A DNA stretch of 64,000 nucleotides from Tubulanus polymorphus (lineage: Eukaryota > Animalia > Nemertea). Positions 45,738 to 64,000 of this stretch are shown piece by piece. How positions within the stretch are numbered: position 1 is the stretch's first letter; the number at the start of each line of letters is the position of its first letter. The stretch is from contig NC_134033.1 in the NCBI RefSeq assembly GCF_964204645.1, positions 14,330,655 to 14,394,654 on the forward strand. Direction: 5' to 3'. A model generated the notes under the pieces. That model was not told where the DNA came from, did no database searches, and saw only the letters and a program-made list of their open reading frames with translations. The position numbers and the translations under genes are program-made.

Positions 45738-48700
45738 ATGGCAAAACCTTTTTATCTAACGATGTTTGCATTGGTGACAGCGTACGGTATGTATACGATG
45801 CTCCCTTTACCAGGTCAACTCCTAAACATTAAGCCATTAAAGGCTGATTGGTTCAGCTTTATACAAAGGGCTGACCATATACAACCATAACTCGTATGCA
45901 TATATTGATAATCAAAATATTGATTGAAAATTCTGAAGATTTGATTTTCTTATTCTTTTCTTTATCCTTAACTTTGTGAAATGGATATAATTTTATGCGG
46001 ATAACATTGTTATTTCAAACAATACATCGACAACACTGACAACCTGGTATGTAGCGAAATAATTCGGCCCGTTCTAATCTTTCTCTCTAGTAGTATCAGC
46101 TGCGGGGCAGCCAGCAAATGAACCAGTTCGTGAACCAACAGTCAATCCGGTCAGGGAACCAGCGGTCGATTTAGTCGGCGAACCAGGACCGGTTTCGACA
46201 TCACCGCCGCAATCCGGTATCTTATCATCTTAATCATCCTCGATACGAAGTATATGACTTTGAAACCCGAGGCCAATAATCAATAGCTCGCAAACAAGAA
46301 ATCTTAGATTTAAGATCTTGTAGCCAATCTAATCGTTCATATGATTAAACTACTTTTTACTAGACCGTGATTTTAATGGTGAAAAGTTGGCATAATTAGC
46401 AGAATAACAACACTTAAACGTGGTGAAAGAACAATAAGATAACATAAGACATATAACATATATACCATAAGATAAAAACCCACTATATACAAATTCAAAT
46501 TAGGAGTGTTTTAAAATCGAGAAATAATCATAAAAGACTTTTAATTTAATTGTACATAGTTGGTTTTTATCTTATGTAGGCCTAATTGTTGTTCATCGTT
46601 TAGAATATGATATATTTTTCTTCATCACCGACAGTTCCAGCATTGGCTCCTTCGGTATGGAGCGAAACGACGAAAGCGCCACAGCGACCGAACGAGAACC
46701 AAGGAACGACTAGTCCTAAATTTCAAACAGACTTTCGATGTAAATCTATTATCATATTATCCACATTCTTCATATCCGTAATATCCACAATGATCTAGCG
46801 ATAAGTTCAAACATAATCGAGATGAAAATTTAAGCAGAGTGCGAAATGAATGACTAAGATGCTTTTTGATATGCGCTATTTGAATATTTCAAACAAGAAA
46901 AATGATATTCGCAGGTTTAATCTCTCATCGCAGACATATCTTCGAGATCTTCGCCAGTTGATAGTACGTTAACATGTACTTAATGTTTTTTTTCTCTACC
47001 GAACGATTCAAGCTTTGAAAATGATCGAAGCCGACAAGACAGAGAAAGGTAAGATAAATGAATAATCCATCGTTATACATTAATTTCATGCAACCTAAAA
47101 GATTATATCAGATTTGAAAACTGTAGCTCAACGACGCAGGTTAGGGGTTCTTTATTTCACTTGGGTACCGGTTACACTGCTGTGGCAAGCGGAATTTCAC
47201 CATGATCCTCCAGGTGTCGCTAGTGTACAATACGACGTCGACGATTAAAATCTAACAATAATTTCTCAAATTATATGCATTATATATGAAAATCGTGGCA
47301 CATACGAACTCTGAAGAATAATCAGAGTTTATTTTCGATGTGTGATTTGACCAATTTTTTGATTGGAAGTCTGAAAATTCAGATCAAAAACTAATTTTGA
47401 TCGAGTGCGTCTCATATATCAGTGGCGCCATCTAACGGAAAACTGGTAGAACTGACCTGGAACCAGCTACTGTCCACACCCATACAGAATTAGTACTTTC
47501 CAAAATTAAGAACATTTAGGGAATTAAAGAAAATTATTTGAACGGCCTTTTAGGTCAATTTAAATTTGCCTAAACGGTCTAAATGGGACGGGCGAATTTT
47601 GAATGAAGTGTCACTAGTTGGTCTGTTCTAAATTGATTGGTTGGACCAAATGTAGACCGTTCTAAATAAAATGGTGTAAATGCGGTTGTGATAAAGAATC
47701 AGATATTCGGAAAAATCACGCGGGATATTGCGCTAATCAATCAACCAATCGCATTTGACCGCTTATTTGTGGCACATGCCTGCGCGGTATCAACACAGAT
47801 TTCTCATTTCATCTTTGCATTCGTCAAATAATTACCCGACGCTGTTTACAGACTGTGACTGCGCCGACGAGCTGGTTAAACAACCCGACGACTGTATCGA
47901 TATGGTCAACGATCCAAAGGGAAAGAAATACAAGGGTGGAGCGACGACTTCGGAGAATGGTCATACTTGTCAGCGCTGGGACTCGCAGGAACCTAATCAA
48001 CACAATACTCCCGAAGACAGATTCCCGGATGGTGAGAACTTCACTTTTATCTCAACAAAACTTTAACTTAACTTTCCTTTGGCGCGATCTTGATGTTGGT
48101 TTCTTTCAATGAGGAATTGGTAAGTAGATATTTCAGAAATACTAGAAATATACTTTTTGAATGATTCAGATATTTCGTTTCAGAAAATAAAACGGCCGCG
48201 GAAAACTTTTGTCGCAATCCAAATGGTGATGAATTCCCCTGGTGCTTCGTTACGGACGCCGACGTTGGAAAAGATTACTGCGATATTCCAGAATGCCGTA
48301 AGCCTGAACCTATCGACAGATTTCGTTCGGTGGCTCGGGTGAATATTCGGCGTATATTTTTGTCTTTCAGCCGATGAGTGTCTTAGCGATCCGACGGGTA
48401 AATACTACGCCGGGCGAACGTCCGAGACAGAATCGGGAAGGAAGTGTCAACCGTGGGCGTTGTTGAGACCACATTCGCATATACTCGGCCAGTATTATTC
48501 TTACTTCCCCGAGAAAGACATAATAAAAGCCAAAGATTTTTGTCGCAACCCCGACCGATCGCCGAAACCGTGGTGTTTTACAATGGATCCGGATAAGAGG
48601 TGGGAATACTGCAATATCAAGCAGTGTCCAACTGGTAAGTATAATCGTGTCAAAATTGTATATGCCTAAGTCAGATCGCTGTTAGTCGGAAAATTAGAAT

Positions 48701-51700
48701 AGTCGGGTCTTGTAGTTGCCTGGTTAGTTAGTTTCCTCCACAGGTCAGGTTATCCTTATACGTACATAGAGTGATGATGACGTCCTTTATGCATGGTATA
48801 TTCAATTTGGTGTATTTGTTTTGTCAGTCAGAATTTTTCAGTAAATATCCCTAAATCCGGCTTCATACGACATACTTGTATAGTCGCCTTAAACTTAGCG
48901 GGGCATACTTTTCCCAACCGTTTCGATCCACGCAGGCAGTGTTCGTTTATCTTCGAATCAGCGTGACTAAGATATCACAAATGGCAATGTCGTTTATAAA
49001 CATCGCATTTCATATATTAGTTCAGTAAAAAACCGAATGTTGTTATATATAGCAGGAACAACTAGAATAATAGGTGCCGCCACTACAGTGCTACGTGAGC
49101 CAACGGACGCACCGATGGAGACAACCGTTACATCGAAACGTGAGTATACGGCTCCAAAAATCGATAAATCTCCGACAGGTGAGTGAAGCTGGTGATTGAC
49201 CGTTGAAAGGCTGTATAGCAAAAAGCCAAAGCCAAATTCAGACCGCGAGGCACCCGAACGAGTTAACTCCGGCGCTTTGGTAGGCGGAAAGTAACGATTG
49301 ACGCTACGTTTTGTTCAACATTAGGCAGTTATTCATAATCGACGTCAAGGTCGGCTGTCAGCTGACGTCGTGTGACGACAGCTTTTGTTGTTTACATCAT
49401 CGAGCACGACATGCCCTCATTGCCACTAGATGGCGAACTGGTCAGTACTAGCTGCTGTGACTTTATTCAAGACACTCTAATGCTGTCATACAGTCGTTTA
49501 AATGCACAGCGAACTTTTCAGGGAACACTAGCAATGGGCGATTTTAAAGAAAGTGAACAAATGGGAAAACATCAATACCATTGTAGAGTTTTAAACGACA
49601 GATGAAAAGTTCTTTAGAAATGTAGACAATCGCTATGTCAATCGAACCAAACCTGATATATAATTCCTCAACGAATCAGGCGTTTCTAATACTGCGTTCA
49701 AATACCAGGACCAGCATCGATGTATAAAATGTTTCTAATGCTGCTTCTATTTTTGTTTTTTCACCCTCAAGCTCCCGGATGTATAACCCCAGAGGGTGCA
49801 TACGACGGCTCTGTCTCGACCACTGTATCGGGATTCACGTGCCAGAGATGGGATTCCCAGCAGCCGCATAAACATATCTATGCAAACCACCCGAACTTTT
49901 TTCCTGGTAAAACAATTTCTGAAAATGAGAACTATTGCCGCAATCCTTTTCCAAAGTATTCGGAAACTGCTTGGTGTCATACGACTGATAGATGGTTGCT
50001 ATGGGAGTTTTGCAATGTCACCGAATGCGAGCCACCGAAGAAACCAAAGCCAGGTATAGACACGGTTTGCAACCTAAGAATAGCTGATTGTGCTGTTCTT
50101 GGCTAGCATCGATAGTTACACTTAAAAACAAGAAAACAAAATGGAAAGTTTATTATAGACACCTTGAAAAAGAACACACGCAGTGCTTCGGCGAAAATAT
50201 ATACATAGTATAAATCATATGATATAGATAATGACCAACTAAGTAATTTGGATTTGAATTTATCGATGATTGATCGCCAAACAGTCTAACCCCGATATTG
50301 ATAACGTATACTACAAGTCTTAAACATTCAGATTCATAATTGTGAATTTTGGCGTCTATTTTGTAATTGAATAAATATGTCATCAATTTCACAACTCCTA
50401 TTTCCAACGGCTTTTGATAACTTGTTATTTTGAAACGCCGATATTGATGACGTAAAGCACATCGACTCACACAGAACCCCTTGAATAACGTATATTACTA
50501 GATGTATGTATATATTGTGTAACGGTTTTTACGGCGTCAAAAATGTTTTGGCACTATTCAAAACCTGCTGCCAGATAGATAGATGATGGTAATAACGTGA
50601 GAGTTCATAATCTTTTATTTGCTATTTCTGTCAGGTCCCGAGTGCAAGAAAACCGCCGACGGATTAGATTACAAAGGAGTCCAGTCGAAAACGAAGAGCG
50701 GTAAATCGTGCCAGCTTTGGCTAGCCAATTACCCGCACGCAAAGAATTTGCATAAAATGTATAATAATTTTCCCGAAAAATCATTGAAACTGGCGGAAAA
50801 TTACTGCAGGAATCCGGACAAAAGTTCGACCGGACCTTGGTGCTACACTATGGATTCGACGACCGAAAAGGAAACATGTGGCATACCGGACTGTCCAGGT
50901 AATATTGACATTGTTTAAACTTTCTTCCCTGTAAGATTATTATCGATAAGTCATGTTTTTCGTAATGGTTTCGTCAAGCTGTGGGCAGCTCCTTTTCGAG
51001 TCCCTATAGCTTTCCAAAAGATTCTTTGCAAGAATCCTTAAGAATGCTGGAGGTACTAAATACAGCAACAACCCGCGATAAGTTGGTTAGATTTAACCAG
51101 GAGATACATAGTTGACGTAGTGACAATCAAAGTATATTTTTAGTATGTACCCTGGTAATGTATTGGATGGTTATCGTAAACAATCGTTTGGCCAACACTG
51201 TCCCGTGGTATCGATTGGGTTAACCTGGATAAATACAGGATACATACCTTGATGACAATGCAGTCTTGAGTGTCAGTGTTCCACATGTGAATTGAAATGA
51301 ACGATTTGGACAACTGGGATTGATAATATTAAAACGTGGTGACCTCGGGAGAAGACGAATGCGAAACGATGTCATTTTTTTCTATCATTCGATTTCTGAA
51401 TGATATTTCAGAATGCAAGGAGACGAAGAAGGGTTTGAAATACATGGGTGAAACAGAGTACTCATTTTCCGGAATGCGATGCAAGAAATGGTCGACACGG
51501 AATTTCGATGGTGACAATTTTCCAGAAGGGGATGTGGCAGATGCAAAGAACTATTGCCGAAATCCTGATGGGAAGGACGAAGGTCCGTGGTGCTTCATCG
51601 GTCAAACTGACGACGATTGGGAATACTGTTTTGTTCCATATTGCAATCCACCAATGCCACCAGTGCCCGGTAAGCACGTGGTCCATACATTTCATAATCT

Positions 51701-54700
51701 GATGAAAGTGACTAAAACTGAATAATTCATCCGATCAATTCAGATTGATAACTTGCAATATTCATTCCATTTATTAGGATTGAAAGTGAAGTATTGCTTC
51801 TAACGAAATGGTTTATTTTCATATAGATATTTACACAATTAATGAATGTAAAGTAAAATAGAAACAAAACTCCGGTTAGAAATTAGAGATGTAATAGTAT
51901 CAGATGAAGGAATACTTTCTAGAGACAGCTTATACAAATGAAAATATTTTTACGTTTTTGTCATGATGTCATTTTTTCTATAAGTTCACTTTGTTTTTGT
52001 TCTTTTTCATTATCTTGTTCTCTTCGTTTTTTTTTTCTCATGAGGGTGATACATAACACAAGCACCAAGCTTTCTTTGTACCGTTCTCGCTTGCTTTTTC
52101 CTACATTCTATATTTACAGTTTGATAATAATAATAATAATAATTATTATTATAATAGTAATAATATAATAACCATCAGATGAAACAAAAAGAAAATAAGA
52201 TAAAGAGAAAAACTAAAAAGGGAAGTAAGGAAAACCATCCAATACGGAACGATTACTATGATCTTGTATTCTGAATTCACACTTGAATTACACGAAGCTA
52301 GAACAGGGAGTTTGGCTAAACGGTTCTTATAAAGTAAGACTGCATTTTTTTCTTTGCAGGTAGGGAATGCTACGAAGATAACGGCAAGTCATATACGGGC
52401 AGTTCTATGGAAACCCGTACCGGCAAATGGTGCCAGTCGTGGATGGAACAAGTACCACATCGACACGGATATTCAAATGCGAATGATTTTCCAGATGAAT
52501 CGCTGTATGACGCCTCTAATTACTGCAGGAATCCCGACAACAGTGAAGATGGTCCGTGGTGTTTCACAACGGAATCCGATGTCAGGAAAGAGTTTTGTGA
52601 CGTTCCAGAATGCAAAGGTAAGTAGACCATCGTCGAACGATAAATAATATCATTAGCTGTGATCGCAAGAGGTTTTTTTACCCTGCAAAACCGTTCACAA
52701 CCGCCAAACGCATCGTTTCTGTATGACACGATTTAAAAAGTTGGGCAAGTTCCGTGCAAAATCTCAGTTAGGATAGATAATCCGCGTGAAGGCTAACTTG
52801 CTCCGCAAATGACGCATTCGCCGCTTGACGGAACATGTTTCAATGCTGAGTCAGCGGTTTACGTGTGATAGTACTCTCTTATTAGGAATACCTGCCAGAT
52901 TTGACCCCAGGCCACTTTCACCTCCTCCCCCGGTAGGGATTCATTTGAACCTGATGGCGCGCTACGGTACGAAACCATGCAACACTAGCCTGAGCAGCTT
53001 TGATGATGTCATTTTTTGCCTTGCGTTTTCCATTTATAGTTATATGTATAGTTATAGTGTAAAATTAGCCTCAGCGATCATACAGCAGGCGATTTGATTG
53101 GCGCCGCGAGTTTTCGTGCGGCAAACCTGCGCATGTACCTGCGCACGCGGTCTAGTGTGACAGGTTTTCGAGTGTAGCGATGCCATTGGGTTCGAATCCC
53201 TGCCGAGGGAGGATGTTTTGACCCAGTTTTGACCCATCGTCTGCATGTGATTGCAGAAAATGGAAGTTAAGTAAAACTATCAAAAACTAAATTGAATGCG
53301 CATTAATATTGCGATTTTTCCGTGTACCTCGTAGTATGATATATAACCAAACTCACGCGGCTATCTTTGGTTGAATTCGGATACGGGATACGGATTTATT
53401 GATCAATTCTAGATTGCAAGGACAACTTAAAAGGCCACGATTACATCGGCAACAAGACGGAAACTGTGTCCGGCTTCACTTGTGATTTTTGGATCAACCA
53501 CGCCATCACGGTAGATTCGTCGAAGTTTCCGTATGAGGATCTCGATGCTGCTAAGAACTACTGTCGTAACCCAACCGATCAACCCGAGGGTCCGTGGTGT
53601 TACGTCAACCACCAGACTTTAGTATGGGAATATTGTTTAGTGAAACTTTGCAAGAAGCCTGACGAGCCGAGTAAGTAAGAAGCATATATCCTTGTTGGTA
53701 GAAGCAGGGCAACTACTGTTGACACCACGTTTCGGCTCTTGTAGTTCGAAGTTTTGTATATTTATTTCAGTTCGATGTTTATAATTTCTTATAGCTTTTC
53801 AACTCTGTATTGTGCTGCCACCTATCGTTCTTCTTATTTTCCGGTTTTATCACGTCATTTTGGGGTAGCCACATTTGAACGCAGCTGGTTTTGGTTGTAG
53901 CGATATCTTGTCAAAAAAAGCTTTGTTGTCCCAAACGTCTTTGCGTCTTGGTTGAAATTAATGGTCGAATAGACAGTTTGGACGTTGAGAAAAATTCAGT
54001 TTTGGTTGTCAGTAGCAACAACAACTTTTGAGGCATATTCCACAGAAAGCTTCCACCCTCTATGGCCCTATGAGATCACTATATTGCCTTTGTAATGACT
54101 TGCTTTCGTGCTAATTTTGCTTTTAGCTGATGAATGTAAAACGGACGAGCAAGGCTCCGATTACGAAGGGCCCGTTAACGAGGGCAAGATCGGGGGTAAA
54201 AAGGTCGAATGTCAAATGTGGATTGCGCAACATCCGAACAGACATTCGCGACGTGGCGATAGGTTCCCCGAGGGCAGCCTGTTCCTCGCCAAAGACTACT
54301 GCCGCAATCCGGACAACGACCCTAAAGGACCGTGGTGTTACAGTCTTGATGCGCCTTACGGTAAGGCTCATTGCGATATCGAAACATGCCCGACAACACC
54401 TGTGACAACAGAGAAAACGGTGACTGAAGTGACGACTCCGCCGCCTGTCGACTGTAAGTAGCTAAACTGACAGAAAAGATCAGTCATGAATAAGTATGTT
54501 AATATGTAAGTGGATATGCAAAGTGGAAATCACACGACTTGCTTGCCAATGGGGTTCTAGGTTGGAAGTGCATGGCTCTTCAAGCTCGACCGATCCACTA
54601 AAAGCTTTAGGTTTACTAGGTTTAAGAAGCTTCTTCACACATTCCAGTAGAACATCGTCTTGTTAATAATCTAACGATCAAATCTTTTATTTCTTATGAC

Positions 54701-56077
54701 TCAGGTGCCGCTTATATGGAGGCAGACTACGGTACGTTTCTTTTGCAATTAGAAAATAACTGTTTCAACATTTCAAAAATGAATACCTCGTTACACTTGA
54801 GATCGAATTTCATCATCAAAAGATGTCGTGTTGAAGACGATCATCTAAATCATAAATTCATGATGAGGATTTTTTAAGAATTACGTTACAATAAAGTGTA
54901 ATCAGCCGAAGTTTAGACGCTGAATATCTTGTCGAATCGTTTAAACAATTTTTCAGCATTGGTTAGGCAACGTTCGAATCGCGGAAAGAAGAAAAATCTT
55001 CAGTGCGTTTTTCCGTTTACCTATCGAGGTAAACAATACCACAGTTGTATCCTGCACTTTTCCAAAAAACCATGGTGCGCCGTGACTGCCGATTACGACA
55101 TGGACAGGTTGTGGAAATATTGCTCGGGTAAAATTAAACTTATACGTATTACGTCGTACCAAACCCGAGCCAAATTTTATCACGGGACAAAGCGATTGCG
55201 ATTACAAAGCGTTTGAACTTGCTCCAGACTTACTTCGCTTTATTTGAACATTGTTGAGTATCGAGTGAGTGGTTTAAGTGTGAACGCGCTCTCTAATTCG
55301 GCACGGGCCAAATTTGACTCGGGCCTATGATCTGTGCCAATTTGGCCCGGGCCAAATCGGCGTCTCCGTGTGATCACGGCTTAAGATAACCATGTCTGTA
55401 TTATGATCGTTCCATCCCTGAACCGTCTATCTGGCTGAATTATACACGATCCGAAGAAATGCATTAATTTTTTATCTTGTTTTCTACTTTTTCCTTCAAG
55501 CCACCTCTATCATATTAGATGCTCAAAATCATCCTTTTAAGGCTTTGGTCTACACAGAAGCCTTCATTTTTCTCTTTATATGATTTTTTTCCGTTGAAAC
55601 ATTTTTCAAGTGGGACGACGTTATATACGCATCGTCCGAACTATCAATTGTGTGATGGCGCTGATCACACACGCGATTAACTTCTAATATGACGTGTCTG
55701 TCGAAATAATCATGAAATAATCATGAAATTATGGTTAATACGAAATTCGGTTAGTTTTATTTTCCCACGGACATCGAACTAACGGGGTTTGACTGTATAT
55801 CCTAATATTCACGTCGCGAAATAGCAACTGATTATGAATTTATTCAGATCGTATGCCTCGTTATTGTAGATTACACATTAACCATTCACGGAGGATCAGA
55901 TCCTACAGCGTCTAAATGCAGACTGCCTTTCATGTACCTAAATACCGAATATAAGGTTTGTCTCTCCTACCACGGCGAGGAGCCTTGGTGCGGGACAACT
56001 TACAACTTTGACGTCGACAAAAAATGGGCGTACTGTAAAGGTAAGCCGGTTATTATGCCATTTTGATTAATTGGAGT

Positions 56078-56122
<45 letters not shown>

Positions 56123-56661
56123 AATAATAATAATAATAATAATGATTTGATAATAATGTATTTTCCGCGTTAACTCTCGGAAGGACTGCAGCACAAATAA
56201 GTAATGAAAGTAATTGAAATTAAAAATAATGAAAATCGTGATGAATTTGATTCAGATGATTAGCGAAATGAAGAAAACTTTTTTGGGGAAATCACGAGAT
56301 TGAAAATTAAGCTGAACATAACTTTTTGCCAATTTGAAGATTCGAATTGAATTGAGCGTCAACCAGTCTATTCCAAATATTGTCAACTCAATTATTGTCT
56401 CATTGCCATACAACCGGTATTGAAAGTCATCAAATGAAAAAGAAGAGTCATAAAATGTTATCGATTAAAAAATAGATGTTTTAAATGTTATTTTGAAACG
56501 CAGATATATCAATCGTAGTACACATCGTCTCTACGACCTTGATTATAAGGCATAGTAGTTTTGTAACGGTTTTAACGGCGCCAAAATACCAATTCTGTGC
56601 ATCGTACTAATCGAGAGTGTTTATTTGTATTACAGCAACACGTTCCGACACCGTCAGATAA
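45738..56661 (+). CDS. Secreted multi-kringle protein (plasminogen/apolipoprotein(a)-like kringles x8 plus fibronectin type II x2, no protease domain), ~1,013 aa
   Basis: All introns are phase 1. Exons: 45738-45786 (signal peptide); 46091-46216; 46635-46739; 47013-47048; 47852-48031 and 48184-48297 (K1); 48371-48634 (K2); 49053-49178 (Thr-rich linker); 49772-50053 (K3); 50635-50898 (K4); 51412-51669 (K5); 52360-52617 (K6); 53413-53670 (K7); 54127-54453 (K8); 54705-54731; 54957-55127 (FN2, CVFPFTYRGKQYHSC...PWCAVTADYD...WKYC); 55870-56040 (FN2); 56636-56661 (stop). Each kringle has 6 Cys and the (Y/F)CRNP...WC motif. Confidence 0.9.
46403..46576. mobile_element. Degenerate copy of the Penelope-like palindromic element
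   Basis: ataacaacacttaaacgtggtgaa...ataagataaaaacccactat...atagttggtttttatcttat matches the outer arms of the 7587-7855 element. The ribozyme core is lost. Confidence 0.55.
52123..52170. repeat. (TAA)n imperfect microsatellite
   Basis: Seen directly. Confidence 0.9.
55255..55381 (-). mobile_element. Partial copy of the 58462-58760 MITE, inverted
   Basis: gtgtgaacgcgctc...ggcacgggccaaatttga...gggccaaatcggcgtctccgtgtgatcacggct is approximately the reverse complement of 58462-58575. Confidence 0.7.
56079..56143. repeat. (TAA)n microsatellite
   Basis: Seen directly. Confidence 0.95.
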
Positions 56662-57629: not shown

Positions 57630-60600
57630 ATGGACAATCGACGACGTAGCCCTTGTATGGATGAGAATGAGGACGTTTTATCGGATGATGAAAATGATAT
57701 GAAGTGGAAAGAAAACGTTTCCGATGCGGGGTATTCAAGCTGGATGCCTGGTACACCTGATGTAAATACAGGGCGGAACGCGGGCAATGAACAAGGTGGT
57801 GAAACAAACAACGACGATTCTAACAGGTTGAGTAGAACGATCGAGGCAAGGTACGAATTAAACCTCTCGTTGCATAGTACGGACAACGTCCGTTATAGAA
57901 CCATCCTTTTTAATGCCATTGTTCACTCAACGCCAACATTTTTCAGAGAAAAAAAATTGTACCAATCCGACTCAAATTCAATGAAAATACTATTCATTTT
58001 AACGCCATATTTCCATCGGTCCCAACAGAGTGGTATTATGACAGACTTCTTTGCAAGCGATAAAAAATCATCGGGTCCAACCCTTAAGTTTTGTCAGTTA
58101 AATACAAATTCGAATTCAAGTGCTCGAAGTAACTCTCGAGTGGAAGTGGGTCACCAATACGTACGCGAGTAAGTTAAACGTTATGCCTTAATATCCCGCT
58201 GTAGGAAATCGGATATCGTCGAGAGGTGGAATGTTACGTCATTGGGTGAGATCTGTGACACGCAGGACACGATCAAATACACAAGGGGTACGTGCCGGTA
58301 TGGATAGCTTCATGAAATTATAATTGACAAGCGTAACTTCTTTAATTGTATTCTTTATTTTAGGAAATAGGACGACACCTACAAATCAAGGTATTGTATT
58401 CAAGTGAAATTCTTACCCTCAATACAATTCAGATCTGCAGTGATCATAAACAGGTTTCCCAAGCCGCGATCACACGGAGACGATTTGGCCCGGAACATAC
58501 TGGCCCGCACCAAACCCCAATCAAATTTAGTCCGTGCTTAATATAAAGAGCGCGTTCACACTAAAACCACCCCTCGTTACTTGTAATGCGATCAGAACTG
58601 CCCGTGATACAATTTTGTACATAACGGGTCTAACGTTTTTGAGTCAGGTCAAATTTGGTTCTCTTCAAACAGGCACGGATCTATTTGGCTTTGGCAACAG
58701 TGTCACGGTTGGTCCGGGCCTCATTTGGTGCGGATCTGAAATACTCGTGTAATCGCGGCTACAATTCCTATTTCACGTTGTATGATGAGTATAGACTGTG
58801 TCTTAACATCAATGACTTCAATAATATGATAATCAGATAAACACAATATGATATCGATTAATCCGTTCCTATGGAATCTTTCTGATCGGATTGTTTTTAT
58901 CTACCAGGTCGGAGACGGTCGTCGACCGCGCGTAGATCTGGCGACGGGTCGTCGTTCACGTGGCACCCGGTAGTACCGATGAAAGCGCCTCGGCCCGTCG
59001 TACAGTCGGACGAACTGTCGCAGAAGCAACACCGTCAACTGCTCAGCTCTATGGAGAAGAAAGAGACCTATAAACGAAGGAAACGCTACGATTTGTTCTA
59101 TTTCGGACCAACAACATCGGCTGAAATAACTGACAAACTAAACAAAGATGAGATACTGGTAACGTTAATGCAGATTGAAAAGATGATAAGTTTTTCTCGG
59201 TGAAAATGATACTTACCCTCAAGTAATCACCATACCCACAAAGTACAACATCTAAAAAGTTGAGGGATATTTTTCAGAGAAACAGTTGTCTTACCGTTTT
59301 ATTACTGTTTCTCGTGCAATACGGAAAGCTGCCAATAAAAGATATCACTTTTATATGTTCTTTTAGGATATAGAAGCCGATATGACTCTCAACGAAAGAA
59401 ACTTCTGGCCCAGAGAGAGTAATGTTCGTTTCGTACGTGGTATATTATTTCGTTTGAAGAATGAAATTACTGTGAATATCGTTTGTCGAGGTCCGTAGCG
59501 TAGGGCGGGCTGGTGATTCGGGTGGTGGTATAACTTCCGCTGATTTCCGATTTAAAACCCTTTCAGCGCTGACTAGTTAATACCCTATAATGCTAGAGAT
59601 AATTTGGAGATTTTCAAAAATTCCAGCCTAGTGTGTTTCATAACGGGAATACCACTATAATGCGTCTACACCGCGGTGCAGTGTATCGTTAGTTACTAGT
59701 ATTTCACTATGTTTGACACGTGCTGCCATCTTTCAATAGAGATAAATACTAATTTTTAATTACATCAATACACCGCAGTGCAGTGTACTAGCGAAATCTA
59801 TCACTGATTTATACACCGCACTGCGGTGTAGACGCACTGAATGGAAATATCAAGCGGACACGTTACACTTGAGACCATTACAACATTAATGCAAGTATAT
59901 TAGTTTCAAATATTCTTAGGACAGGGCCCCGGACCCCCTTTGGTGCAAACTACGTTAAATGAACCTTCGATTGTATTCTACGGGCCTGGGCGTCTCTACT
60001 TAGTAAAGCTTTCGTTATTTCGTACAGGAAATTCTGGCTCTTCCGCCGTTCAGTGACGACGACTTGAAGAATGCTGAAAACTATTGGAATACGGGAACGC
60101 TCGAATCGAGTACAGCCTCGGATGCGAATGATATGTTGATCGAGCAGTTGATGGAATCCTGCAGAAAATGTACGTATGCCTAAACTGAAATACCAAACTG
60201 ATTTCATCCACGTATATACTGAAGTGGATCTCTCGAATCAGAAGTTCTTTGTGACGCCGTTCCTACGTGTGTTGTTAGAATGCATCTTTCGAATTATCAT
60301 TTCAGTATTTTCCAAGATTCCCGATTCGATCAAGGCTCTTCACGAAAATGTCATTGGGTGTGATATAGAACCTCACGCATGGCATCTGCACATGTTACGC
60401 GTAGACCTTACACGTTTTTGGTCCACCGATGCTCTGATTTGGAACTATACGATGACATACGACAGAGATCTCGTCGGAAATCTTGGCTATTTCGTGCACA
60501 GGTTCGTGAGGTTGACCTCGATGTTGTAGATGTGGAATCATGTTTTACTGTTCGATAACTTTCCCGCATAATACATATACACCAACCTGATTACCTAACT

Positions 60601-62620
60601 ACCCCGTTCACCTAATATCTTCCTGTACCTATTCTCACATGTCTGTCTGACTGCTTGCTTGCCTGACTCCTTACCCACCTATTCACCTATTTGCCTACCT
60701 ATTTACCTACCTATCTGCCTACTTGCCCCAACCCACCTACCTACCTACCTACCTACCTACCTACCCACCTACCAACCACCTACCTACCTACGTACCTACC
60801 TACCTATCTATCTACCTACAACCTATGCCTGCCTGCCTACTTGACCACCCACCTGCCTACCTGCCTACTTACCTACCTACCTACCTACCTACCTACCTAC
60901 TTACCTACCTACCTACCTACCTACCTATCTATCTATCTACCTACTACCTACATGCCTGTCTACTTGACCGCCCGCATGCCCACCTGCCTACCTACCTACC
61001 TAGCATATTCTTCATGTGCATTATTTTGTCTCCTGTCGTGTGGTGTATTCTTTAAGCTACCGTTTAAAAATAAATGTTCACCGTTTCCACCCTACAGGAC
61101 GTTAATGATTCTGAAACACCGACCTCTCACTTTTAAACTTTCACCTGACACGATCCCCGAGATTTATCTCCGGAAGGAAGACATCGAGATGATCGCTACG
61201 GTGAACCTGATGCTTAGGTCGTACAAAAAACACATTCGGGAAGGAAGGTAAAGGAAACGCTCGAAGCTCATCCTGATCCAAATGAGATCGATACCAACAT
61301 TGGCCAAACAAGTCTCGTCTCTCGCTTCTCGAACTCGTAATCTATATTCGACCCAAACTCGGAGATATCACGAGGTTTCGCTTCTTTGCTTGCAGACCTT
61401 CGCACGCAATCGACGACATCTTTTCGTTATCGCGATATGGAAACCAATACCTCGGGGCGAATCGGCCGTGGATATCAATAAAAGCAACATCTGAAAATGA
61501 AAGGTTGCGTTATTATCGAATCAAGCGTAGACCGTTTCATTTCCGCAATTTTTAAACGATTTCTATGTTTTTCAGAAAGAAGGCTGGGACAGTACTCGGT
61601 CTATGCGCGAATATTTGCTTGCTGTTGAGTCTATTGATACTACCGTTTTTGCCGCGCACGGCCGCCGACATTCAGGAACAAATAGGTTTTTCTTGGACCG
61701 ATGACGTCATACCTGACTACATCGTCCCTTATCTAGATTCGAGCTCCAAATTAGAAATCGAAAAAGTAAGCCGGTAGGGTATCTTTAGTGTAACTGTTTC
61801 GTTCCCGGCTGGTGTATCGGGTTTGTAAGGGTCGCAAAATTCAAATCAAACCAAGATTGATCAGTCATTCAAATACTATAAGAAGGACGACAATTCCCTT
61901 TTTCTCCAAGGCCTCGGTTTGACACTCATATTACGATTTCCGAGGTCCTGATGATTTTCGTGTGTCACATTCAGTATTTTGGTCTTAGATAATCATCGAA
62001 TAAATCGAATGAAATTAAGATCGAACGCATTTAGAAACAACTATACCAAACAAGTAGATGAAGCTGATACCAGTATAGAAATACAGTCGTTTCTATATAT
62101 GACAAAATCTTTCATACTTAACTCCCCTAATTCTCTGGCGAGACATATGTAAACGATAGATGCTGAAGTAAGGAATACAAACCTCATCCATACACGCGTC
62201 GTCCCGGACACAATGTTAAAAGCCACATAGACAAACAACTATATACTTTGATTCCGATTTCAAAATCAAACCCCCTGTTTCGCTCCTGGCAGGTGTGTTG
62301 GGTTTGTAAGGGACGCTGACTCAAAAAATCAAACGAAATCTACCAATGAAATAGATAACAGGGTTAATCCCTATTCTTAGATAAAAAAAAGCCAGAAAGC
62401 GTGATTTGAATGAATGCGAATTGAAAACCCGTTAGATAGTCGATTCTTTGAGCGATCGGGTCACTGCTTATTTGTATTCCGCTCGTGTACAGATACGTGC
62501 ATGATTTCTAACTAAGCCCCGTTCAAATCGTTTGTCTAATTTTTTCAGGTTCGTCGATTGTTCCTTCCTCTACGCTTCCCGGACGAAGACGAGACTGAAG
62601 TGAACGTAACTTGTGAATGA
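57630..62620 (+). CDS. Methionyl-tRNA synthetase-derived protein: novel N-terminal half plus divergent MetRS anticodon-binding domain, no catalytic domain (~498 aa)
   Basis: Exons 57630-57850, 58205-58287, 58364-58390, 58908-59158, 59367-59423, 60028-60169, 60306-60501, 61098-61247, 61396-61503, 61576-61765 and 62549-62620 splice in frame (1497 nt). C-terminal motifs KLFSKI, DLVGNLGYFVHR, IFSLSRYGNQYLGANRPW and KAGTVLGLCANICLLLSLLILPFLP..AADIQEQI are colinear with the eukaryotic cytosolic MetRS motifs KFSKS, ELLNNLGNFINR, ILTISRHGNQYIQVNEPW and [25 protein letters not shown] (recalled). Confidence 0.8.
58462..58760. mobile_element. MITE (~300 bp, possibly PIF/Harbinger-type) in an intron
   Basis: Inverted termini agccgcgatcacacg / cgtgtaatcgcggct, internal ggcccgg and caaatttg subrepeats, and a second copy at 55255-55381. 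Confidence 0.7.
59661..59836. mobile_element. Palindromic MITE-like element
   Basis: tgcgtctacaccgcggtgcagtgtat (59661-59686) matches the reverse complement of 59811-59836 at 24/26, with a third partial unit at ~59768. Confidence 0.55.
60581..61001. repeat. (CCTA)n tetranucleotide microsatellite, imperfect
   Basis: Long acct/tacc array inside an intron. It generates the spurious PTYL ORFs. Confidence 0.95.
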
Positions 62621-63020: not shown

Positions 63021-64000
63021 TCAGGGCTTCCAGTGAAAATATTTCTGAACGATCGACTTCAAGGATTCGGACCAAGATGGATGTTCTTTCACATCCGTAT
63101 AGTTAAACATCAATAAATCAGTTTCGTAAACTTTACTGAGTCTGTGAATCGATCTCAGAGGAACGTCCTGATAAAATCGTTTCATTTTATTCGCCGTTCG
63201 TTTCGTGTCTGGAATGCCGAAGGTTTTCGCTAGTTGCGGTTTTATGTTCAACCAGTCTAGTATGACTGCTACGTCATCGCCTAGGGAATCCCCGTATCGG
63301 GCGATGACGTCGTAGTCTACGTAACAGGGGTGGCACAGATCTTGGTAGGTGCGCCAATGACGGTCCAGCGGAATACGCTTACGGTACGAATCGATGACGA
63401 ATCGCAGGAACTCGCGGAAGGAAACCCCGCGACCGGTTTTCAAGTCTAGTTCGTTCGGTTTCGTGCGATAGGTCCGTATGATGTAACGCCCGAATTTCTG
63501 CAGGAAGTAACGATCGTGCGATCTGGCCGTGAATTTATCCAGATACGTCGATAGGAGGCGCTCGAGTGGGTTGCGCACGACCATGAATTTGAAGTAGGTG
63601 CTGATGCGAGTATGGCGCTGGAGTGGCGTGTACGCGCCCAGATTTCGTAGGGAGTTCGTGTAGCGTCCATTGTGGACGTTAGCGCGGTCGATTCGCGAAA
63701 GATTAGCGGCGTTGATTTTACCGCTCGAGTGCAATAAGGTCCATTTCCAATTCGTCGAGCCGACCTTGGGGATCTCGCAGTACATGACCTTGTTCACGTC
63801 ATCTACTAGAATATGTCTCAGTGAATTTCCTCCTGTAAGATGAAGATAAGAACAAAATGTTGTATATTCCGGTTAAATTTCTGGATAGGACTAATAGCTT
63901 TTTATTTTCAAGTATCAATTTCTCACGATACACAATATCTACGTACCTGGCAGTTTCGTTCGCGGGCTGCTCCGCAGTTTACCGCAAATCGTTGACACTA
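63021..64000 (-). CDS. Carbohydrate sulfotransferase (Sulfotransfer_2 family, CHST11/HNK-1ST-like), 5'-partial
   Basis: Exons >64000-63947 (VSTICGKLRSSPRTKLP) and 63832-63021. Motifs HILVDD..KVMYCEIPKVGSTNWK (5'-PSB), FMVVRNPLERLLSTYLDKF (3'-PB), HW..Y.DLCHPC.VDYD and VYETDLLMFNY. Confidence 0.92.

Follow-up and report, generated by a model that had tools for sequence, protein, structure and literature searches.

Catalytically dead derivatives of aminoacyl-tRNA synthetases (aaRSs) are a known kind of protein: they include DALRD3, SLIMP (PMC10570016), and the catalytic-null splice forms and plant fragments (PMC7564348). The gene considered here, LOC141910586 of the palaeonemertean ribbon worm Tubulanus polymorphus, occupies positions 57630-62620 of a 64,000-nucleotide stretch of DNA (the window; contig NC_134033.1, positions 14,330,655 to 14,394,654, assembly GCF_964204645.1) and is annotated in RefSeq as an "uncharacterized protein" of 392 amino acids (XP_074657379.1). 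It is an ancient duplicate of the cytosolic methionyl-tRNA synthetase (MetRS), MARS1, and has lost the catalytic core while keeping the anticodon-binding domain; in an incomplete search of the literature, no animal gene for an anticodon domain descended from MetRS came up.

The vertebrate protein DALRD3 has an anticodon domain of the ArgRS type but no catalytic motif, and it guides METTL2 to tRNAs for arginine (PMC7237682). Like DALRD3, the worm paralogue is a separate animal gene that joins a class Ia helical anticodon-binding domain to a lineage-specific N-terminus and lacks a catalytic motif; unlike the paralogue, which is MetRS-derived and known from sequence in one species, DALRD3 carries a DALR domain of the ArgRS type, occurs in every sequenced vertebrate, and has a proven role as cofactor of METTL2 (PMC7237682). 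The parallel is one of analogy, not membership: Pfam, at E<=1, finds no DALR domain in the paralogue, only Anticodon_3. SLIMP, which works with SerRS2, is likewise an animal synthetase paralogue that has no active site and retains a tRNA-recognition element (PMC10570016), but it is class II, mitochondrial and widespread, and complements a partner whose tRNA-binding domain has been lost. In T. polymorphus, MARS1 and MARS2 are complete and retain their tRNA-binding domains; the paralogue is thus not a complementing subunit of the SLIMP type. Catalytic-null splice variants and plant aaRS fragments (PMC7564348) also dispense with the catalytic domain while keeping appended or binding domains, whereas LOC141910586 is no splice form but a multi-exon locus of its own that diverged long ago and shows signs of purifying selection; moreover, the Arabidopsis MetRS fragment comes from another region of the enzyme (PMC7564348).

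The closest relative is, of course, the parent. With human MARS1 (5GL7/5GOY) and the worm's own copy the paralogue shares intron positions, the bundle fold, equivalents of R656, W725 and F802, and probably a linker helix together with its docking patch. By contrast, it has no GST, HIGH motif, Rossmann fold, CP1, zinc knuckles or WHEP domain, its KMSKS loop is reduced to FSK, N652 and K804 have become Tyr and Pro, its N-terminus is new, and it evolves about 4.5 times faster.

Descent is recorded in the exons. Exons 7-11 of LOC141910586 correspond to MARS1 exons 14-18: all four introns between them fall at the same codon and in the same phase, and the 5' boundary of exon 7 is in phase 1, as in MARS1 exon 14. 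In a phylogenetic tree, the paralogue is placed within animal MARS1 (support 100/100); its branch measures 1.47 changes per site, versus 0.33 for the parent. The parent itself is intact on another contig, at G000:C6:2840500-2849050 (20 exons, 1021 amino acids, GST through two WHEP-type repeats), and MARS2, on C9, the contig of the window, has HIGH, a KMSKS-like loop and an anticodon domain; the paralogue, which is single-copy in the genome, matches MARS2 at 23%. LOC141910586 thus derives from cytosolic MARS1, not from MARS2. An earlier, sequence-only reading of the window had proposed a duplicated synthetase repurposed as a non-catalytic factor; the introns, the tree, the motifs and the simulation described below support duplication, lack of catalysis and maintenance by selection, and the separate full-length MARS1 that such a history implies is the one on C6.

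Database searches agree; the queries were single exons, for which exons 2 and 3 are too short, or the 392-residue RefSeq protein. The best match of the latter is human MARS1 (5gl7, E=2.6e-21), and the sole Pfam family that it matches at E<=1 is Anticodon_3 (PF19303; E=1.2e-8, 35.4 bits versus a cut-off of 23.5). Exon-by-exon Pfam searches are too weak to help, with only exon 10 giving a match (E=0.17), although this exon as a query recovers the RefSeq record at 100% identity. Provided with an alignment of MetRS sequences, AlphaFold2 (AF2) predicts a helical-bundle fold with a predicted local distance difference test score (pLDDT) of about 80-98 over residues 191-380, which superposes on residues 600-815 of human MARS1 (5goy) with VIA Z 23 and a root-mean-square deviation (rmsd) of 2.7 Å over 208 aligned residues. 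The alignment wrongly put the KMSKS segment at residues ~100-120, and residues 1-185 of this model are not trusted; single-sequence AF2 is uninformative (pLDDT 34.5). An Atlas model of the protein has a template modelling (TM) score of 0.63 to cytosolic MetRS. An anticodon-domain profile match and a superposition on MetRS had both been anticipated from the letters alone.

The whole gene comprises 11 GT-AG exons (from the ATG at 57630 to the TGA at 62620) in a single open frame, just as first read; the length then given, 498 amino acids, does not stand, the spliced model being 487 residues long and the RefSeq protein 392. The exons, and the presumed RefSeq start, are:

57630-57850, + strand: exon 1, from the ATG; acidic, low-complexity; coding log-likelihood +16.4 in frame; absent from the RefSeq protein
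58205-58245, + strand: exon 2, 41 nt, phase 2 to 1; required for the frame, with a weak acceptor; absent from the RefSeq protein
58364-58390, + strand: exon 3, 27 nt; the region's best acceptor, open frame; absent from the RefSeq protein
58785-58788, + strand: the sole nearby ATGA|GT able to supply the "MS" start of RefSeq; weak donor (score -3.1), so assigned tentatively
58908-59158, + strand: exon 4, an Arg/Ser-rich stretch and a basic helix with KRRKR, resembling a nuclear localization signal (NLS); coding log-likelihood ratio +30; in RefSeq
59367-59432, + strand: exon 5, 66 nt; boundaries agree with RefSeq
60028-60169, + strand: exon 6, probable MARS1 linker helix (pairwise match to MARS1 241-260) and a new helix, with the deletion junction after it
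60306-60501, + strand: exon 7, equivalent to MARS1 exon 14 (phases 1/2 and 3' boundary as in MARS1); FSK, stem-contact fold and first anticodon-domain helix
61098-61247, + strand: exon 8, equivalent to MARS1 exon 15 (p<=0.001; intron positions identical); anticodon-domain helix and linker-docking patch
61396-61503, + strand: exon 9, equivalent to MARS1 exon 16 (human MARS1 5gl7, E=0.0027; 46% to own MARS1); holds the W725 equivalent
61576-61765, + strand: exon 10, equivalent to MARS1 exon 17 (5gl7, E=1.3e-4; 38% to own MARS1)
62549-62620, + strand: exon 11, equivalent to the start of MARS1 exon 18; F802 kept, K804 replaced by Pro, no WHEP, then a short acidic tail and the stop

Where does the protein begin? 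XP_074657379.1 equals exons 4-11 of the 487-residue model, apart from a differing two-residue start. We prefer the 5' end at exon 1, judging from the sequence, because coding periodicity there is clear (the other two frames score -17.1 and +0.8, with a null maximum of 14.4) and its donor is the strongest in the region, whereas the donor of the RefSeq start is poor. The 5' end of the RefSeq model is probably wrong: it lacks three exons (57630-58390) whose coding or splice signals are good, and apparently begins with only 4 nt of coding sequence in front of a weak donor (58785-58788). Three public sequencing runs look DNA-like, with introns covered and no spliced joints.

What was lost is everything needed for catalysis. 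The protein has no HIGH-like motif (H.G) and no CxxC, versus four in its own MARS1, so that the zinc knuckles are missing; neither the exon searches nor the RefSeq-protein search of Pfam returned tRNA-synt_1g (PF09334); and the 64-kb window holds no catalytic exon or remnant. The KFSKS loop survives as FSK (in KLFSKI), followed by an eroded stem-contact motif. The NCBIfam metG profile is matched over positions 373-510 only, at 52 bits versus a whole-protein cut-off of 336. Profile searches and the sequence likewise reveal no GST, WHEP or EMAPII domain, in keeping with the earlier claim that nothing is appended. Class I chemistry needs both HIGH and KMSKS to form the aminoacyl-adenylate; with these motifs missing, it follows that the LOC141910586 protein cannot activate methionine. 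A separate catalytic-only partner gene was sought in the genome; the third PF09334 match there reads as a HIGH exon of LeuRS type.

The N-terminal half had been described as some 255 apparently disordered residues with nothing of MetRS in them, followed by colinearity with MetRS from residue ~258. Exons 7-11 do follow MARS1 from FSK through the bundle, but RKLFSKI lies at 248-254, and the picture of the region before it holds only in part: HIGH, Rossmann fold and zinc knuckle are indeed absent, and exon 4 does carry the KRRKR patch, but helices are predicted with low to medium confidence at residues 131-161, 212-224 and 232-252 of the 487-residue model, and exon 6 probably, though not certainly, keeps the MARS1 linker helix. 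The start of this exon is identical to MARS1 241-260 at seven of 20 positions and similar at 14 (pairwise E=3e-4, shuffle p=0.007-0.017). In human MARS1, I233, A236 and W240 of the linker helix dock on the anticodon domain (PMC8216282), and exon 6 has L, A and W at the same spacing. The other side of the interface also looks preserved: M672, L674, L682, A683, L744 and F785 of the human patch are I, L, I, A, L and I in the paralogue, and hydrophobic residues persist at three patch positions (I242, A253 and I355) where archaeal enzymes, lacking the linker, have polar ones, although for two of the three few animal sequences could be compared. In addition, the acceptor AG of exon 6 lines up with a CAG codon within MARS1 exon 7. 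The match is short; a PDB-wide search did not recover it, nor did it recover the worm's own MARS1 exon 7, and an Atlas search with the N-terminal half found nothing. Because helix and hydrophobic patch both appear to be kept, the simplest history would be an internal deletion of MARS1 exons 8-13 that left both sides of the linker/anticodon-domain interface in place.

Has the gene been maintained? Over 208 codons aligned with MARS1, amino-acid identity is 36% and nucleotide identity at the three codon positions is 50, 64 and 32%. Four-fold degenerate sites are at chance (8/28 identical) and the proportion of synonymous differences (pS) is saturated at 0.84, with nonsynonymous divergence (dN) of about 0.62. 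When neutral decay to 36% identity was simulated, with indels excluded, frame and splice dinucleotides remained intact in none of 3000 runs; the 11 exons show no pseudogene signs (stops, frameshifts, lost splice sites or a neutral codon pattern), and coding-type periodicity extends to exons 1, 4 and 6, which are not homologous. A frame and splice sites that stay intact while synonymous sites saturate imply selection, and for most of its history the gene has evidently been both translated and constrained; a recent loss of function is possible on the same sequence evidence.

Human MARS1 reads CAU with five residues, N652, R656, W725, F802 and K804 (PMC8216282), which in the paralogue are Y, R, W, F and P. 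Three of the five are thus kept (R220, W295 and F374), among them the pair that holds C34, R656/W725; the N652 equivalent lies in exon 7, at whose end the R656 codon is divided. The proposal that the protein binds tRNA-Met is therefore only partly sustained: R656, W725 and F802 have their equivalents, but two contacts are gone, as are CP1 and WHEP. The best reading, by analogy with DALRD3, is of a non-catalytic reader of the tRNA anticodon arm, or adaptor, a view we hold tentatively, at just under an even chance. An old MARS1 duplicate would have lost its GST and WHEP exons; an internal deletion would have removed exons 8-13, with HIGH, Rossmann fold, CP1 and zinc knuckles, leaving a self-contained module in which the linker helix docks on the helical bundle that binds the anticodon and the eroded stem-contact fold lies between the two; and the protein would have gained a new N-terminus, charged and for the most part disordered, that includes a basic helix resembling an NLS. 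In such a protein, the conserved Trp/Arg pair would grip C34, the N-to-Y change would relax or alter the check on A35, making discrimination at position 35 weaker or different, and the KRRKR-bearing N-terminus might recruit a partner, e.g., a tRNA-modifying enzyme (as DALRD3 does METTL2), or direct the protein to the nucleus. Descent, domain loss, fold and long-term selection are established for this gene; that it is expressed, and that its product binds RNA, has a partner and may be nuclear, is what we infer.

Several observations weigh against this reading. The residue that became Tyr reads A35 and is invariant in 96/96 comparison sequences, and with K804 two of the five contacts are lost; CP1 and WHEP, which add tRNA affinity, are gone; the domain is less positive, its net charge dropping from about +6 to +2 (the ranges compared are not identical); and the AF2 fold depended on an alignment of MetRS sequences and is not independent of it. 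No orthologue was found with exon 10, with the RefSeq protein, or in metagenome or encoding-contig searches, and constraint on the RNA face therefore cannot be separated out on its own. Exon 10, searched against 1.84 billion representatives, returned only its own protein, a single spurious match to a repeat protein, and fragments of MARS1 that scored 35-47 bits; the RefSeq protein returned two archaeal-type MetRSs only; the metagenome and encoding-contig searches were empty; and a search for full-length animal MARS1 returned only archaeal enzymes.

Much of this would suit a functional protein whose bundle is a protein-interaction scaffold, or a decoy for MARS1 partners or kinases, that binds no tRNA and keeps its W and R through packing or inertia. 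Besides the lost contacts and lowered charge, many family-conserved surface residues are altered, the branch is fast, and it is the fold, linker helix and docking patch that persist; however, an exposed C34 pair that outlasts 1.47 changes per site is easier to explain if the nucleotide is still read, and we consider the scaffold rather unlikely. Less probable again is that selection on the duplicate has relaxed and that the gene is now weakly expressed or died recently. The record comes from one species, several donors are weak, the odd 5' end in RefSeq may mean thin transcript support, and species-specific aaRS fragments have a precedent in plants, where those of Arabidopsis and rice are not common to both (PMC7564348). 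Yet such a gene would have to carry 11 exons free of stops and frameshifts past saturation of its synonymous sites, which neutral decay achieved in fewer than one run in 3000 even without indels, and to show coding-type periodicity in exons 1, 4 and 6.

Could the N-terminal half instead be a collapsed catalytic domain, or could the protein act in trans with MARS1 or MARS2, much as SLIMP partners SerRS2? Exon 4 weakly resembles beta1-HIGH-alphaA-beta2 of the Rossmann fold, with three ordered blocks aligned to MARS1 274-357, where that fold starts (p=0.005 regionally, p=0.06 against whole MARS1), and the phases of exons 5 and 6 equal those of MARS1 exons 12 and 13. But this order cannot be squared with the match to the linker helix, two introns of MARS1 are absent there, a profile test does not see the resemblance (p=0.16), and the same short motif matches Kelch repeats by chance; a Rossmann remnant is left unproven, and with MARS1 and MARS2 both complete there is nothing for a trans partner to complement. 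We regard this alternative as quite improbable. That the exons belong to a full synthetase broken by assembly or annotation is scarcely credible. Nothing positive speaks for it, although short-read contigs do break at two intronic repeats; against it, one read-derived contig (59815-60723, from a run that may be the source sample) crosses the exon 6-7 junction, where catalytic exons would lie, with zero differences, so a local assembly deletion is unlikely. The window has no catalytic remnant, both flanking genes are closed, and the real MARS1 is only 36% identical; the assembly error that the earlier reading had named as a possible refutation is not borne out.

If the anticodon-arm adaptor is expressed and binds RNA, the route of DALRD3 (duplicate, drop catalysis, keep the anticodon reader) would have been taken again with MetRS, whose tRNAs control initiation. 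As a natural experiment, the gene suggests that, catalytic core aside, linker helix and anticodon bundle are the smallest stable unit of eukaryotic MARS1, and its N652Y/K804P pair may test how CAU recognition can be re-tuned. A more specific version, again built on analogy, makes it the second independent animal case after vertebrate DALRD3, and the first found from MetRS: a nuclear or cytosolic adaptor, conserved across palaeonemerteans, that reads C34 with position-35 specificity relaxed or re-tuned and chooses tRNAs for modification or sequestration. In full, this is doubtful.

Upstream of LOC141910586, at 47755-56661 (+) and probably continuing further upstream, lies a large gene in which kringle domains of one exon each follow one another (Pfam confirms three, motifs give about eight); its 3' end has fibronectin type II domains and then a stop, with no protease domain there. 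The stop, at about 56661, is about 970 bp upstream of LOC141910586, in agreement with the <1 kb first noted. Downstream, 63021-63797 (-) is the last exon of a carbohydrate sulfotransferase 11-like gene, identical to the T. polymorphus RefSeq protein XP_074657380.1; no relative was found for this exon at E<=1e-20 among 121 candidates. This gene and LOC141910586 are convergent, their stops 400 bp apart.

Very high-copy interspersed repeats sit in introns 5, 3 and 10 (59580-59841, 58461-58494 and 62252-62330; summed contig depth up to 150,000). The one in intron 5 resembles a miniature inverted-repeat transposable element, with 26-nt inverted arms 124 nt apart, and intron 7 has a CCTA-type microsatellite at 60636-60999. 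In the parental MARS1 (L010:5878-6752, G000:C6), intron 13 (441 nt) contains no stop when read in frame with the exons on either side, which makes an open frame of 309 codons; this may be chance, but retention of the intron would add 147 residues just before KMSKS.

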